Below, in pieces: positions 1 to 63,320 of a stretch of DNA of 64,000 bases (the stretch's first letter is position 1; the number at the start of each line of letters is the position of its first letter). Source of the stretch: Thalia democratica (lineage: Eukaryota); contig OZ241826.1 of assembly GCA_965202585.1 (NCBI GenBank), positions 87,730,001 to 87,794,000 on the forward strand, written 5' to 3'. The position numbers and the translations under genes were made by a program. Below the pieces are notes generated by a model. That model made no database searches. It was given only the letters and a program-made list of their open reading frames with translations, and was not told where the DNA came from.

Positions 1-1132
1 AATACTTAAAAGTGTTGTAGTGCCTTTAAGGTCACTTATTAAGTCTATTAAGTCTGTTTTTTAATTTTTTAAGTTTCTAAAAAACTTAAGAAAAATTAAG
101 TTGCTTATAATAACTATTACAAGACATAAAGTTTGTTTAAATAGTCTAAAGTTAAGAAAAATTGTTCAAAAATAAATGATCAGCTGCATTACGTGAAACA
201 AAAATTTTTATTAAAAATAACATTTATTATTATGATGTTGTGTATGTGAAAGTATACTTTTTCTAACTACATCACTAAACGTAAAAAAGTGAATCTATTA
301 ACAAACCACTTATCACTAGTACATCGGTAACTTTTAAGTTTAGTGTCGGCAAAATTTACAAAAAGTTCATTAATTTAAAGAACTCGAAAAGTTTGTTAAA
401 AAACGAGGAAGCAGCTGTTGGGTCACATAAAATTTTCAAACGTTTGAGAAAATAATAAATTTTGACGTTTTTAACTTTTCATGTTCGCGTCAAACAACAA
501 AAAAAAATACTTCAAAGGAAATTATCATGTGAAATTTAACTTTTTTAGTGCAAACAAAGAGCACCTGTTTGATTGTAAACATTTATAAAAATTTTAAGTG
601 TTACCTCCATTCTGTTAAAAATTGGTTTTAACTTTTTATAAACTTTAAACTTTTTTTTTTGAACATTTAGAAAAATTAAAACCCGCATAAAAACGTTTGA
701 ATTTTTTTTTACCTAATTTAATTTATTTAAAAAATTCTGTCTTTTAGAACTTATCTTTATTAGAGCAAAACTATTTATACATCATAAACTAAAATTTCGA
801 ATAATTTTACTTGTATTGTAAAATTACTTAATTTTTTATTGACAAATTCTAAAAGAACTTTATAAAACAAAATTAAAACTATAAATTTAAGTCTTCAATC
901 TTAATTAACTAGAGTCTGTAAGATTATTTATAAAAACGGACTAACTTTAAAAAAAAAACTTTAAATGTCTAATTTTTTTTCAACTTATACTTCCATACCC
1001 TATTTAAAAGATGTACAAAACGTTTTGTTTCATAAAGAGTTTTTAAGTAATATATATTATGTATATTTGGTTTACTTATATAATATTTAAAACAAATAAA
1101 CAAACCTGATTAGTAGCATGAGAGTTTCTTAC

Positions 1133-4100
1133 AGCTTGAGGAAATGAATTATTTAGACCTAAACAAGTTTTGCTTAAATAATCTAGCACATTTAATATTC
1201 AAAAGCTTCTAAAATTTACTTATTAATTATAAAAATAAAATTATACAATCTAAAGTAAGACTTAGAGGAATATAAAATGAACTATTTTTTAAAAGTTGAA
1301 ATTAAACTAGATTGATAGTTTCAACTTCAATATTAATTACAAACAAATATTCGAGGCTTGAAACATTATCAAAAATTTATCTAAAAAGACAAAGCTTTTG
1401 TCAAATTATCATAAAAAAATGTCTAAAATTGTAACTTAGTTAATTAAACATATTTAAATATAGCAAAATATATACACATTTTTACATTAATCTCTAACTA
1501 ATCTAGATTATTTAAAACACTGAAATACCAACTTAAAACTAATTAGGCTAGGGAGTATTGTACTAAAACTACACCAAGACATGTATTTTTTTTAAGACAC
1601 CAAGCAAAATAAGATTGAAACTCATTTTTAAGATATTTGAATATTTACACAACTAACTATTTCATTTAGTTAAGTTACCTTTTGGCTGGCTAATTACGTT
1701 TTGACTTTTCATTTGTTGGCCTGCAGATGTAGATAAAGGAAAAGTTTTATTAATTTTGCTATTTCTTGGTAGCTTTGGATTTATTTGATGACTTTTGAAC
1801 ACCTGAGGTTCACTTTGCGTCTTGGCTAAAGCTGGTACGCTTTGCATCTTTTCTGCATTAAATACTGTGTTCACTTGCTTTAGTTGTTTATGTTGGACCT
1901 GAGCATTGCATTGCATTTGGTTAGTACTTTTAACCTGAGCGTTACTTAGTAACTGGGAATTAACTTGAACCTGAGAATTACCAGGTAACTGAATATAACT
2001 CTGAACTTGAGGGTTGCCTAGTAACTGAGAATTACTCTGTACCTTAGGGTTGTCTAGTGTTTGAGAATTATTATGAACCTGAGGAATACCTTGTAACTGA
2101 GAATTACTCTTTACCTTAGGGTTGTCTAGTGTTTGAGAATTATTATGAACCTGAGGAATACCTTGTAACTGAGAATTACTCTGTACCTTAGGGTTGTCTA
2201 GTGTTTGAGAATTATTATGAACCTGAGGATTACCTGCTAGCTGAGGATTACTTTGTAGCTGAGGGTTACTTTGAAGCTGAGAATGGCTTAGCAATTGGTT
2301 AGTACTTTTAACTTGAGGGTTACCTGGTAACTGAGGATTACTTTGAAGCTGAGGATTACCTACTAACTGAGGACTACTTTGCAATTTTACTTGACCGTAG
2401 TTTTGTACTTGATTAAAAAATAGTTGTTGAGGAGCAACTGTTGTCGAATTTCCTGGATAACTCGAAGAATTTCCAGCTGGATATACAGTAAAATTTATTG
2501 GAATTCCTTGATTTTGAACAAGAAAACTTCGCTGTTTGTTCTGAAAAGTTCAATAAAATCGTTAACAATTTAGTATAAATAAAACTAAACAGTTGCAGTT
2601 CACGTTCAAGTTTTTTAAAGTAAACAGACCAAAAATAATTATGCTATTTTATGAACAGTAGTCATTACTTATGTTAAGTTATTATTAGTATATTAAAAGA
2701 GGTTATTAAAGATTTAACAAAACAAATATTAATGTGTCAATAATTTAATAATAACATTATTAACACTTAACATTAAACTATATTAAGGTTTTAATAACAC
2801 TCAAAGTAACTTATAAAGCATTAAGTTTTTTATATATTTCGTGGTTTTTAATATTTGTTAGTGTTTGCAATGGTAACTTAGTACATTATGTATATTCATG
2901 TCATGCCTAGTTTTATGTAGAGTAGCCCTAAGTAATATTTAATAATATCGTTCAGTATGAGTTAAATTAAAATTAGTTGTTAGTAGGTGTTTTATTTATT
3001 GTAACCATTCAAGTAACTTTATAAATTTATTGTTTAAGAAACTTACAATTCATGTAATATTGTACAAAAAAACTAACAGCAAGATACTGATTGATGTCTA
3101 GATTTATGGCTTGTCCCAAAGCGATTGAAGCCCGCTGTCCATGCTGTTAAAAAAGATATTTTGTTTATTCAATTAAATAGTAAAACTTTAATACTACTTA
3201 AAACATAGTTTTATTAAAAATTAATTATTCTTAATGCTTAGAAAGAATGTTTACACCAGCACTTTAATTTTATATTATATATTTCTACCTATTTTTATTT
3301 GATTTTCTTATAATTATGTGAATAATAAAAAAACTACATGTTTAAAAAACTCCAAACTTAATAAATTTGTAGAATATTTTTTAGATTAAAAAGTAAAAAT
3401 GTCTTGAAATCAAAACAGGAAACTCAAATAACGAAGAATCTTTAGTTACTAACGGTAACAGGAAGTCTAATATTTAGAAATAACTTATGTTTGTTGTTAA
3501 AAGCTAAAATTATTGCATTTCTCAAAAATTTATAAACAATTTCAACTTAAAGGCTTTAACCATTCTATTTTAAACAGAAAGTATAAGTTTTTAAAAGTAA
3601 AAAAAATAATTATTTCAAAAAATAAAGCCTACAATACGCACACTCATAAATTTATGTACATTTTTTTATAATTTGCACAGCTGAAACTTTTGTAAAGTAA
3701 CTTATCAAAATCCTTTTATTACATATAACGTTTCACAACTAAAAATTATAAGTTTATTGTTTAAAGTTAAGATTTCAATTTTATTAATAAATTTATATGC
3801 TAATAATTTCAAAGTCATTTTGAATAACGTAAATAATCAAAAAAATATATTATTGAGTGCCATGATTATTTAAGTAAAAAGGCTTTCTTTTTTTTCAAAC
3901 ATAAATCTTTTAATTTTACCCTATAAAATTAATTAACAAACAGAAAGTTTAAATATATTAAATCAAATAGTTCAACAACTAACCTCAGGTGGTAAGTAAG
4001 GTAAAATTGAATTCATTATTCCAAAAAGAATGTTTATTATTTCACCCTGTTGAAAAAATATTCTAAAAAAATTGAAATATTCACGTATAAAATATTTTAC

Positions 4101-5235
4101 ATTTTTTTGGTAAAAAAAAAAAAATTACTTGAAAGTGTTTAAACTCTGTATCACTATTTTTATATTAAACTTTAAATAATTTGTTTTCGACTTATCAAAT
4201 GTTATATATAAAAACTTATTTATGAACATTTTTAACCAAGTATGATTTTTAGTATATCTAGTAGCATTTCCTTTTATTTTGTTTTACTAAAATTTGTTCT
4301 ATTAGTTTTTGTTAAGTTATAATATTTTAATATTTTAGGCAATTTATTAAAAACTCACTCTTATTTGAACTTCTAAGCTTAGACTTATTGCATCATCGTA
4401 AAACTAAAAACAAATTTTTTCATTAAAAAAAAAGTTTAATTTGTGATAAATTATGTTTTAATTTGTTAAGTGAACTTTACATCGTAATATATTTCAATAT
4501 TTATTAGGTTTTTACATTTTAATACGTTGCCCTGTACTTTTCACACTAAAATATAGTGTAATCTTAGGTTGTCAAAAAAATTATTTAGTTACATTAATTT
4601 TAGTAGAGAATAATTAATTTTATTTATTATAAATTACCTTAGTAAACAGCTCTTGGTTGTCATTTCTTTCTGCAACTACTTTTTTATACTCTGTCCTTAA
4701 ACTGAATATTTTATTTTATATTACTTAATTTTAAAAATCCTGTGTTGATTTTTTTCAATTCAACTATTTAAAATGAGAAAATTTTTTACAAAATAAATAG
4801 TTAAAAACAAAACTTTGTTTTAAAAGCTTATATTAAAGTACTTTAAAAATTCAAGCCATCTAAAAAATTAAAGAATATTAACAGAACTATATGTTTATTT
4901 TTCGTTTAAAGGTGAGTAAAAAAGCTTGTATTTTTAATACTGTAGCAACCTAACTAACGATTGAAATTGAATTTGCATGTGTGATGCTTCATTTCTTATT
5001 TTTTCACAAAATTCAAAAATATTGTCTGCTCCCAAACTGGTGTTCACTAACGGATTTGCACCCTGTAAAAAAAACATAGTATTAATCTTGTCAGTTCATA
5101 AACATTAAAAAAAAAAATTTAATCAAAAACTAGACAAAAAACAATTCAGTTTAATTCTCTTATATTTATCTACTGGTTACTAAAATGTTATTTATAGTAT
5201 TAGCTTACATTTCCATTAGAGTTATGAGGAACCAT
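1133..5235 (-). CDS. TLE: Divergent Groucho/TLE corepressor gene, 5' part (Q-domain plus expanded GP-like region); the 3' part is unresolved and probably lies beyond the left edge
   Basis: Hand-spliced exons, all GT-AG and phase-compatible: 5209-5235 (MVPHNSNGN), 4959-5062, 4638-4701, 4359-4403, 3984-4046, 3078-3143, 1679-2540, 1133-1158. Translation ...NIFEFCEKIRNEASHMQIQFQSLRTEYKKVVAERNDNQELFTKFYDDAISLSLEVQIRGEIINILFGIMNSILPYLPPEHGQRASIALGQAINL... aligns by eye to the TLE Q-domain ([81 protein letters not shown]). Exon sizes 104/64/45/63/66 mirror human TLE1 (101/64/45/63/75, recalled from memory). Confidence 0.85.
1679..2540 (-). CDS. Large Q/N/P-rich repeat exon of the TLE-like gene (contains track ORF 1662-2384)
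   Basis: Acceptor ttttcag at 2541-2542 and donor AAG|GTAACT at 1677-1678. Length 862 nt, open throughout, phase 0 to 1, which matches the following 26-nt exon (phase 1 to 0). Confidence 0.85.
2030..2240 (-). repeat. Coding tandem repeat: about 3 near-identical 72-bp units (24 aa, xPQVHNNSQTLDNPKVQSNSQLQG) within a degenerate 18-bp/6-aa array
   Basis: The unit gaattactctgtaccttagggttgtctagtgtttgagaattattatgaacctgagga... recurs at about 72-bp spacing. Confidence 0.9.
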
Positions 5236-6399
5236 CTAAATGATTTTTAGTTTTCAATTTTTATATATTACTTAAATACTTTACAAGTATACCTAAAAAT
5301 ATATCAATAAATTTTGTAAACAAAAAGTCACAAATGGTAATAAAAGCTAATTTTAGAATAAGTCATTGGAGCTAAGGTTCTTGTATTGTGTTTTTAATTT
5401 ATCCAACTTTAGTTGTTAAACTAAGTGTATAAATTAGCACTATAGATAATAATGTATATTTTACTTAACAATTTTTTAATAATCTTTTTTTAAGATCATA
5501 ATTGTTTTTACTAAGTCGTAAATGCTTTAAACTTTTTTTCTTTAAGTTAGTTCGTTTAACTGCTTACACTTTAAAAAAAATTGTTAAGCCTAACTAAAAC
5601 TTGAACAATGACATCTCATACACATTAAAATATTTTTTTCATGCATTTAAAGCTGTACATTCAATAAAAACAAACTGATATAAGATTTTAAAGCTATTTT
5701 AATGTTTAGCCTCAAGGAATAATACAAAAAGAAAGTTTATTTTTGTTACTATATTCAATACTATTTCCTAAATTTGACTACTATTACTTTTTTTTAAACT
5801 CTCATTTTTACAACTGACGAAATCTAAAAAATACCGTTATTAAAATTTGTTTTGACATTTCCTGTAATATGAACATATATTTTACAAAATCAAAATAAAG
5901 TTTTACGAACTATTTAAACTTTTTTCCCATGTTTTACCCAACTTTTAGTACTTTTTGTTAAACTCTGTAAAAAATGAGGTACTTAAAACTAAACCAAATT
6001 TAAAGTATTTATAAGCTGTACTAATTATGAAATCTTATTCTAATATATAAATAAATGAGTAATTTAAAGATGAAAAATATTTATACATTATAGTTTTTTG
6101 ACTACCTTTACAATATTGTCAGCTTTTATTTTACAGCTTCTTAAAGTGTTTATGAGATAATAAAAATAAGAATAGATTTAAGAATATAAATAAACATTAC
6201 AATAGAACTATTTATTTTTGATGAGCTGTTGTTTAATAATGTGTTGTTTCCACTTAAAAAAAAAATTGTTTTAAATAACTTATAAAACTTAATGAGATAT
6301 TCATTCAATAAATAACGTATTCAAACAAAATTGTACTAACGCGTTAATTTAAAAACTGAAGCTGATGTACCACGTAATCACACAAAAAAAGAAAATAAG

Positions 6400-6892
6400 A
6401 ATTCACAAATTTTGTTTATATTTAGCTACCAAATTCATTTGATAAGCTTTATTATTTTTGTTTATTCCATTCGACTTTCAAAAATTTGATAAATCGGAGC
6501 AGCAAGCTCAATCTGTGTCACTTGCATCTTGTGCATCGCCGTGTGAATAAAATATCACATTTTGCGTTGTTGAAAAATTCACTGCAGCATTTGACATGCT
6601 GAACTAGAGTAGGGGACAAATCGAGAAAAAACTACTAAAGTAAGACCAGCATAGTTTTTATTTGATAAGAAGTAACTACAGCTATTAAGAGGATGACGTG
6701 TTTTGCATCAAATTTAATTCATAGTTTATTTAATTTTTTTAGTAAACAAATATTCTATAACATTAACAAACTGGTGTAGTTGTAACATAAAAAGATTTTG
6801 AATAAGGTCAAAATAAAGCTTACAAGTTTTTTTTTTTTTTACAATTTTCGCACTCCCTAATTAAAATACAACGTAACGCCACTGCTAAAGGG
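6400..6892 (-). mobile_element. Possible piggyBac-like remnant in intron 1 of the TLE-like gene
   Basis: On minus, TTAA followed by CCCTTTAGCAGTG at 6896-6880, a piggyBac-type terminus. A short acidic ORF start follows (MSNAAVNFSTTQNVIFYSHGDAQDASDTD*). The other end was not found and the left boundary is approximate. Confidence 0.4.
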
Positions 6893-7077
6893 TTAACTCA
6901 TTTAAAAATTTTAAAATTTGTAAAAAGTTTATATTTTTTCTTATTAAAACTGTAAATAATTAAAATTAATGTAAAATTAATGAGAACAATAATTTCCTTG
7001 TGAGAGGAGCAAACTAAAGCTGCAAAAAAAAAATTTAAGAACAATATACTCTTTCCTACAGTTTTTTAGATACTTAC

Positions 7078-7136
7078 CTCAAACTTTAAGGAAATGTCCT
7101 TTGCAATATTTAGATAAATTTATTTCAGCATAATCT
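7078..7136 (-). other. Probable non-coding 5' UTR exon of the TLE-like gene
   Basis: Perfect donor GAG|GTAAGTA at 7077. The ATG exon (5235) begins immediately after an acceptor (atttag|ATG), so an upstream exon is required. The 5' boundary is uncertain. Confidence 0.55.
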
Positions 7137-7348
7137 AAAAGTTCTAAAAAAAAACTTTTCACAACAGAAATAATAAAAAATTGTTTTAATTATAAAAATT
7201 TCTACTTAAAATTTTTTTAAATTTATATTTAAGAGATTTTAAAATATTCAAATTAAACCATCTTTATGATATTAAGAAATATATTGTGTAATAAATAAAG
7301 TTGCTATAAAAAAATATTTATGAGTTTTTTGTTATTCAAAAGAAAAAG

Positions 7349-7419
7349 TGCCGCCAGAGAGGCTCGAACCATCGACAGCTATTAACAAGACCAGCGATCT
7401 GCCACTGAGCTATGGTGGC
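7349..7419 (-). pseudogene. tRNA-Thr(TGT) pseudogene
   Basis: GCCACCATAGCTCAGTGGCAGATCGCTGGTCTTGTTAATAGCTGTCGATGGTTCGAGCCTCTCTGGCGGCA. A and B boxes and acceptor stem are present; the 3' strand of the anticodon stem is broken. Confidence 0.75.
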
Positions 7420-62503: not shown

Positions 62504-62635
<132 letters not shown>

Positions 62636-63112
62636 TTAAAATATACAATTAAGATTTATCTTTAGGTTAAAAAAATATAAATATATTATTAAATATTAAA
62701 ATTTAAATTTAAAAATACTGTCAAGTCTGCAGTATATTTAAAATCTAGTTAACAAAAGTTTAAAATTAAGTAAAACAGGTTACATGGCATTTCAAATACG
62801 GAAAATTTAAATAATATTTTTTTTACAGAACCACAACTTAAAAACAAAAGCTATTTTTAGGTTTTATTTAGACACTTCTACGTGTTTTTAAATTATATTG
62901 AAATATATATATATAACTCTATTGTTGTGGCCCTTTAAAAAATATTTAAAAATTTGAATTGTAGAAGATTAAACTGTCTATACTTGAATAGTTGTGCACC
63001 CATTTAAAAAAATCTTTGAAATATTTCCAAGTAATAAAATTGTTCAAAATTTATTTAATTTTTTAAACGAATAATCTTAAATATTTTAAAACCTAAAAAT
63101 TGATTTACTAAC

Positions 63113-63253
63113 ATTGAAAATATTGGCGCCATAAGGATTTTTCCATAAATTCACAAGTTGATCTTGCCCAGTTGTAATAAACCAGTCTTTTTTGTGTGCA
63201 TATTTAAGTGACGTAACACTTTTATTGTGATACTTTACCTGATATTTTGCAGT
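63113..63253 (-). CDS. TLE: Penultimate WD40 exon of the second Groucho/TLE gene (5' part cut off by a transposon)
   Basis: TAKYQVKYHNKSVTSLKYAHKKDWFITTGQDQLVNLWKNPYGANIFN versus TLE [47 protein letters not shown]. Donor AAT|GTTAGT, phase 0. Confidence 0.9.
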
Positions 63254-63254
63254 A

Positions 63255-63320
63255 CAGTCCTTCCTCGCTAATCCGGTCCTCGCTAATCCGGTTCCTCGCT
63301 AATCCGGCCGGTTTTAGTCG
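63255..63320 (+). mobile_element. Terminus of a Tc1/pogo-type DNA transposon (other end not in window)
   Basis: TA followed by CAGTCCTTCCTCGCTAATCCGG with a triplicated CCTCGCTAATCCGG subterminal motif. Confidence 0.7.

Follow-up and report, generated by a model that had tools for sequence, protein, structure and literature searches.

Groucho/TLE corepressors are the default partners of TCF, Hes, Fox, Nk, and Runx repressors. A single Groucho gene is present in most invertebrates, compared with a handful in vertebrates. Canonical members (Drosophila Groucho and human TLE1 to TLE4) combine a Q domain, a variable middle, and a seven-repeat WD40 domain. Short Grouchos, such as vertebrate AES/TLE5 (Grg5) and Caenorhabditis elegans LSY-22, are without the WD40 domain by gene design. 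Mammalian TLE6 is a fast-evolving, lineage-restricted, single-copy paralog with an atypical N terminus and no recognizable TLE_N domain, and fungal Tup1 is a WD40 corepressor with an N-terminal oligomerization helix. A pair of pocket positions, F661 and E677 in TLE1, separates Groucho from Tup1-type proteins, which carry Y and L; TLE6 is listed as departing from the F,E pair, and a Y,E pair has been reported for ichthyosporean Groucho orthologs (Copley 2016, PMC4943189). Here we describe a 64,000-nucleotide window of the Thalia democratica genome (contig OZ241826.1, referred to as C1; positions 87,730,001 to 87,794,000, so that a window position is the C1 coordinate minus 87730000), in which the minus strand from position 5235 to 1133 is the 5' part of a 17-exon gene of the Groucho/TLE family. 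We consider it likely that the gene was disabled recently and that it belongs to a Groucho-like subfamily under selection, in which copies are gained and lost.

The full gene model comprises 17 coding exons and 969 codons over about 11.2 kb (C1:87735235 to 87724042) and runs about 6 kb past the left edge of the window (Table 1). AG/GT dinucleotides occur at each exon boundary, including those outside the window, and the frame is unbroken across the joints of exons 1 to 8. The encoded domains are, in order, a diverged Q domain, a long repeat linker rich in Q, N, P, and S, a serine-rich middle, and a complete Groucho-type seven-repeat WD40 domain. A preliminary description of this DNA had proposed that an ATG exon and five small in-frame exons encode a Groucho Q domain that the open reading frame (ORF) track does not reveal, and the present model bears this out: the small exons are confined to open stretches of 26 to 53 codons, and a plain ORF list therefore displays exon 7 alone. 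The window is very AT-rich, with a G+C content of only about 21 to 34%. To compare copies, this gene was aligned with eight sister loci, and the 17-exon model was projected onto all nine. Exon 1, which we take to resemble the short first coding exon of Groucho/TLE genes, was found in 9 of the 9 copies, mostly as MIPHNSNGN.

The genome holds at least 33 Groucho-like loci, which form four groups when counted by one exon (corresponding to TLE1 residues about 600 to 677). The proposal of a true paralog, rather than the single ordinary ortholog of the species, is upheld by the canonical-type gene at C1:2.35 Mb; what has to be amended is the picture of a lone hidden gene, as this diverged Groucho paralog is one of 12 to 14 copies in its own group (group 4). 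Judged by identity to Saccoglossus Groucho, group 4 is the most diverged of the four, and the best TLE_N matches in the genome belong to group 1. With Saccoglossus Groucho as the query, matches were found at 63 exon-sized places for the whole protein and at 119 for the WD40 part alone (residues 430 to 717), and the first WD40 exon of this gene has 30 matching places in the genome. The DNA of the 5' part has eight further near-full-length matches with 80 to 94% identity, introns included, plus short fragments; some group 4 copies lie on two unplaced scaffolds (C15 and C1312). Across group 4, copies are 77 to 96% identical at the DNA level, and the homology between them reaches past the gene on both sides. 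Identity along the 12-kb unit is a mosaic (e.g., one copy is 96%, 93%, and 81% identical in successive segments from 5' to 3'), which suggests that segmental duplication was followed by gene conversion. Full-text literature searches brought up no description of expanded Groucho genes in Hydra or other cnidarians, the animals to which the preliminary description of this DNA assigned it.

Comparison with a local profile confirmed that the N terminus is a diverged but genuine Groucho Q domain. The profile was a hidden Markov model (HMM) built from the N termini of 52 distinct bilaterian Groucho/TLE proteins. Against it, the spliced 123-residue N terminus scored 48.4 bits (E value = 5e-17) in an alignment that spans profile positions 23 to 120 and passes through all five exons. 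The best of 2,000 shuffles of the same residues reached 6.3 bits, and a chance ORF was rejected on this control. Elsewhere in the genome, the profile gave 156 bits for the canonical group and 92 bits for group 2. Pfam searches with exons 2, 3, 5, and 6 singly returned no match, nor did a phmmer search of exon 2 against PDB, as individual exons lack the necessary length; PF03920, run against all six frames of the genome, did not list the locus even at an E value of 10.

The exon layout of the Q domain recurs in the genome's own canonical-type Groucho (C1:2355827-2359622), in which exons of 64, 45, and 63 nucleotides have the same phases, and likewise in a group 2 copy on C9; the exon equivalent to exon 6 is 75 nucleotides long in the canonical copy. 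The protein sequence, in contrast, is only 29% identical to the bilaterian consensus and 29 to 30% identical to canonical Groucho. Bilaterians have 64 columns with at least 95% invariance, of which 21 are kept here and 50 in the canonical copy, and 24 of the 36 conserved hydrophobic columns are retained. The conserved 15-residue stretch of canonical Groucho is replaced by FYDDAISLSLEVQIR, and the end of exon 3 together with exon 4 reads FTKFYDDAISLSLEVQIR, just as first reported. In a tree of Q domains, the subfamily is monophyletic (100/99 support), with a stem of 2.33 substitutions per site and internal terminal branches of 0 to 0.12, and the canonical group adjoins the bilaterians. The long stem, the 21 of 64 invariant columns, and dN/dS ratios of 0.5 to 1.0 agree with the initial view of a fast-evolving Q domain. 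A link between groups 4 and 2 in this tree may reflect long-branch attraction. Exon 5 ends in LPPE in all Groucho groups of this genome and in LSQE or a similar motif in bilaterians; the shared LPPE ending points to duplication within this lineage as the probable origin of the groups.

C-terminal to the Q domain, the position of the canonical GP region is occupied by the linker of about 290 residues encoded by exon 7, whose length ranges from 632 to 862 nucleotides among copies because of an 18/36-bp array. A tblastn search with full-length Saccoglossus Groucho gave no match between the Q and WD40 parts, so that no GP/CcN/SP similarity was detected; this carries little weight because the GP/CcN/SP middle, to which the HDAC contact, the nuclear localization signal, and phosphosites belong, is poorly conserved across the Groucho family. 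Pfam likewise found nothing in exon 7 or in the serine-rich exon. The six WD40 exons (C1:87727096-87724042) align in order to residues 392 to 717 of Saccoglossus Groucho with 37 to 64% identity (E values of 1e-8 to 1e-17 for each exon). At the two pocket positions, with numbering counted from the C terminus, those of the examined group 4 copies in which the relevant stretch of the exon is preserved carry Y and E (KVYSLG … AAGLE); thus, the E677 equivalent is kept and F661 is replaced by Y. The Y,E pair, the TLE-type Q domain, and the Groucho intron positions together suggest that the gene lies on the Groucho side and not with Tup1, which it resembles in being built as a WD40 corepressor with an N-terminal oligomerization region. 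It shares with TLE6 a fast-evolving, lineage-restricted character and an atypical N terminus, but unlike TLE6 it is one of many tandem genes, and its Q domain can still be detected. From canonical Groucho it also differs in this multicopy tandem arrangement and in a premature stop.

This stop is an in-frame TAG at codon 838 of 969 (C1:87725546-87725548), where the sequence reads ACT ATC AGA TGT TAG GAC ATT. It lies in the fifth WD40-encoding exon as counted for the stop (by its coordinates, within WD40 exon 4 of Table 1), two exons upstream of the last junction, and replaces the tryptophan of the conserved RSWDL, the fourth WD dipeptide. The TAG was seen in the raw sequence, in the protein alignment, and against TGG in seven of the eight aligned sister copies. 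From the gene model, it would delete the last three WD repeats. A stop two exons before the last junction is the usual trigger of nonsense-mediated decay. We infer that this copy has lost its function, most likely through recent inactivation, either as a pseudogene or as a gene whose transcript is destroyed by nonsense-mediated decay.

Selection was estimated as Nei-Gojobori dN/dS among this copy, the three fully open copies, and the copy at C1:87.53 Mb. The WD40 domain gave ratios of 0.16 to 0.35 (20 to 35 synonymous differences per pair), the Q domain gave 0.49 to 0.99 (5 to 14 synonymous differences per pair), and the serine-rich exon gave 0.69 to 2.05. WD40 exons are 93 to 96% identical, compared with 77 to 87% for the intervening introns, and Q exons are 89 to 93% identical, compared with 76 to 91% for introns. 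Therefore, the subfamily has been under protein-level constraint, which acts strongly on the propeller and weakly on the Q domain.

Relatives of the gene also occur beyond this assembly. One metagenome contig of 985 bp (L039) has a counterpart that is 43% identical to exon 7 and is bounded by the same acceptor (cag|AACAAACAG) and donor (AAAAG|gt). Searches of public cluster representatives with the first WD40 exon returned mostly exon-sized fragments, including some that were 82% and 58% identical, and exon 7 had one 183-residue fragment among the public protein matches listed. The family is therefore not an artifact of one assembly. No RNA run was listed among those that contain the exon; the three runs that matched window positions 1 to 6000 are contig sets of about 1 Gb in which introns and exons are covered alike at 90 to 99% identity, and they therefore represent genomic DNA of related strains.

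Several observations weigh against our view of the locus as a recently disabled gene. The same TAG is present in a second copy (C1:87.545 Mb; C1:87545861-87546067, L020) with different flanking variants, which is odd for a random hit, and the TAG may reflect a polymorphism or faulty assembly. In its WD40 domain, dN/dS is not raised (0.16 to 0.28 for this copy). No joint listed in the three DNA-contig runs matches a predicted intron (the joints have sides of 20 to 22 nucleotides and no GT..AG ends). In addition, Pfam's own TLE_N model is without a match in the exon-by-exon searches, and relations between the groups are drawn from the Q domain and per-exon identities. Some of these facts would also fit a working full-length corepressor, in which the TAG stems from faulty assembly or strain polymorphism or is recoded in the mRNA (e.g., by A-to-I editing of UAG to UIG, read as Trp): the stop is the single defect in 969 codons and 32 splice sites, the WD40 dN/dS is as low as that of the intact copies, and an identical TAG sits at the same tryptophan elsewhere. 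However, a G-to-A substitution is atypical of long-read error, the other TAG-bearing copy looks dead, with three more stops and a broken acceptor, and clear lesions in five of the nine aligned copies suggest that gene death is common in the cluster, so that we regard a working gene at this locus as unlikely. The shared TAG could have arisen through an independent G-to-A change or a short conversion tract, or it could be a recoded site. If the copy is disabled, the lack of excess replacement changes in its WD40 domain means that the stop, or any inactivation, is very recent.

A more sweeping possibility is that the whole subfamily is nonfunctional duplicated DNA whose open frames are merely young. 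The copies are indeed 77 to 96% identical with introns included, more than half of those aligned are broken, the Q domain and linker have dN/dS ratios near 1, and no RNA run was listed. Yet neutral decay is hard to reconcile with the low WD40 dN/dS over its 20 to 35 synonymous differences per pair, with exon conservation that exceeds that of the intervening introns by 7 to 16 percentage points, with three copies that remain open at 903 to 969 codons with all splice sites at a dS of 0.1 to 0.2, or with homologous exons that have the same boundaries on metagenome contigs from elsewhere, and we consider this explanation very unlikely. No more credit can be given at this locus to the earlier idea that a short or altered Groucho, whether truncated or AES/TLE5-like, takes part in Wnt/TCF signaling as a modified or dominant-negative corepressor. 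Copies share an open, conserved Q domain, which could, like that of the short Grouchos, engage Groucho-type oligomers, and the stop at codon 838 would leave the Q domain, the linker, and four WD repeats. However, none of the WD40 exons is missing; they follow in the same orientation, their phases match, and they can be spliced, so that the gene is not built as AES is, and truncation would come only from a nonsense codon in repeat 4. An AES-like reading was rejected because a complete set of WD40 exons is encoded downstream. Moreover, the stop lies where nonsense-mediated decay is usually triggered, and a propeller that has lost three blades would probably not fold. This copy is thus unlikely to act as a modified or dominant-negative corepressor, a role that is possible for its intact sisters.

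Taking the locus as a recently disabled copy, we see it as part of a young subfamily that evolves by repeated gain and loss of copies and that, as a whole, selection on the protein has maintained. The intact members would act as Groucho-type corepressors, with a WD40 propeller that docks on eh1 or WRPW-type motifs. Their Q domain, with 24 of 36 hydrophobic positions kept, may still form a coiled-coil oligomer, and its largely replaced surface would make it probable that these proteins are insulated from canonical Groucho and TCF contacts; the changed TCF or tetramer interface of the preliminary description is likewise something that we infer only. In this copy, the TGG-to-TAG change at codon 838 would remove the last three WD repeats and thereby disable it.

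We speculate, with considerable doubt, that the genome may encode more than 30 functional Groucho-like corepressors with rapid turnover, whose Q domains have diverged per group so that each oligomerizes only with itself, insulated from canonical Groucho/TCF, and which partner lineage-expanded transcription factors with eh1 or [WF]RP[WY] tails. Such a coexpansion would be comparable in logic to that of KRAB zinc fingers and KAP1. Even recoding (amber/W editing) is conceivable at the conserved tryptophan where two copies share a TAG.

The occurrence of at least 33 Groucho-like loci would alter the view of corepressor dosage and specificity in this animal, with a canonical group of five copies and three diverged groups, one of which is still duplicating and decaying today. 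Knockdown, antibody, or expression studies of Groucho in this species would face many near-identical copies. The family also offers a natural series in which to ask which Q-domain residues are needed for oligomerization and TCF binding. The locus itself is a real gene model that is missed by exon-blind ORF tracks, yet it is probably a recently disabled copy.

Table 1. Coding exons and repeat of the Groucho-like gene, Groucho-like groups of the genome, and state of the aligned group 4 copies (plain numbers are window positions)
Feature	Position	Strand	Size or copies	Description
Exon 1	5235-5209	minus	27 nt	ATG + 8 codons (MVPHNSNGN); donor GTAAGC
Exon 2	5062-4959	minus	104 nt	Q-domain start (…IFEFCEKIRNEASHMQIQFQS); acceptor tttacag, donor GTTAGT
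Exon 3	4701-4638	minus	64 nt	Encodes LRTEYKKVVAERNDNQELFTK; size and phase equal in canonical copy C1:2.355 Mb and one group 2 copy
Exon 4	4403-4359	minus	45 nt	Counterpart of canonical 15-residue stretch
Exon 5	4046-3984	minus	63 nt	Encodes GEIINILFGIMNSILPYLPPE, terminating in LPPE
Exon 6	3143-3078	minus	66 nt	Q-domain end (HGQRASIALGQAINLDINQYLA)
Exon 7	2540-1679	minus	862 nt	Q/N/P/S-rich low-complexity linker in GP-domain position; ends AAAAG|gtaact, phase 1
Tandem repeat in exon 7	1932-2381	minus	72-bp unit x 3.7	92% matches; within 18/36-bp periodic array; 6-residue units such as NPQLQS
Exon 8	1158-1133	minus	26 nt	(G)LNNSFPQA; acceptor gtttag, donor GTAAGA; last coding exon within window
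Exon 9	C1:87728348-87728206	minus		Left of window start
Exon 10	C1:87727950-87727844	minus		Left of window start
Serine-rich exon	C1:87727611-87727230	minus		Left of window start
WD40 exon 1	C1:87727096-87726895	minus		Left of window start
WD40 exon 2	C1:87726535-87726344	minus		Left of window start
WD40 exon 3	C1:87726034-87725904	minus		Left of window start
WD40 exon 4	C1:87725645-87725451	minus		Left of window start
WD40 exon 5	C1:87724846-87724666	minus		Left of window start
WD40 exon 6	C1:87724161-87724042	minus		Left of window start; terminates in TAA
Group 1 (canonical type)	C1:2.35-2.62 Mb		5 copies	Tandem, ~55 kb apart; 65-73% identity to Saccoglossus
Group 2	C9:51.45-51.98 Mb, C777		about 10 copies	60-63% identity to Saccoglossus
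Group 3	C1:1.53-2.03 Mb, C244		6 copies	52-63% identity to Saccoglossus
Group 4 (this gene)	C1:87.49-87.98 Mb, C15, C1312		12-14 copies	46-52% identity to Saccoglossus
Group 4 copy	C1:87.90 Mb		903 codons	Fully open, every splice site intact
Group 4 copy	C1:87.82 Mb		969 codons	Fully open, every splice site intact
Group 4 copy	C1:87.98 Mb		939 codons	Fully open, every splice site intact
Group 4 copy (this gene)	C1:87735235-87724042	minus	969 codons	Single stop as sole lesion
Group 4 copy	C15:145 kb			One frameshift, exon 16
Group 4 copy	C15:66 kb			Exon 4 with 1-nt deletion; GA donor
Group 4 copy	C1:87.53 Mb			Four stops and broken acceptor
Group 4 copies	C1:87.49 Mb and C1:87.64 Mb			Many lesions

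Some alternative exon calls were rejected in arriving at this model. With a donor for exon 2 placed 9 nucleotides downstream of GTTAGT, the initial splice model scored 42.2 bits and had a 3-residue insertion relative to the Q-domain profile at the joint of exons 2 and 3; moving the donor 9 nucleotides upstream gave the final score of 48.4 bits. GTTAGT also serves as the donor of exons 5 and 6 in this gene and of the equivalent exon 2 in a group 2 copy. A 50-nucleotide version of exon 8 (acceptor at 1183) was rejected because the TAT found in this copy only is TAA in eight of eight sister copies; the 26-nucleotide version leaves three sister copies open through all 17 exons. A 147-codon ORF at window positions -504 to -944 was discarded as an exon, since its frame is closed in the sister copies.

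Further pieces of Groucho-like genes were observed near this locus and in the canonical group. The last two WD40 exons of another group 4 copy, with about 89% protein identity to the end of this gene, occupy positions 62507 to 63259 of the window (minus strand); no first WD40 exon is listed between them and the next full copy at C1:87.81 Mb, which may mark them as a 3' fragment. The sixth WD40-encoding exon (NRLENGNVEVCSLDNTAKYQVKYHNKSVTSLKYAHKKDWF…) has a stray second copy 11 kb downstream, also on the minus strand (L009, about 3425 to 3604; window positions -16396 to -16575; C1:87713425-87713604), and no adjoining WD40 exons were seen there. In canonical copy 1 (C1:2.35-2.62 Mb, L001 to L007), the start of the 63-nucleotide Q exon (QSEVVKRLSQLCSQII) is present twice, about 100 bp apart, which could reflect an exon duplication or a partial copy.

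Within intron 6, contig depth in the three DNA runs rises from about 400 to between 20,000 and 28,000 at window positions 2801 to 3000 (core at about 2894 to 2944). Many loose contig ends fall at positions 2894 to 2899 and 2931 to 2944, consistent with a very high-copy short repeat embedded in this intron. Just downstream of the Groucho-like gene, the minus strand carries an uninterrupted 440-codon ORF that starts from an ATG (L009, about 6088 to 7407; window positions -12593 to -13912); it is apparently a single-exon gene, and by eye its product resembles a BACK/Kelch-repeat protein.

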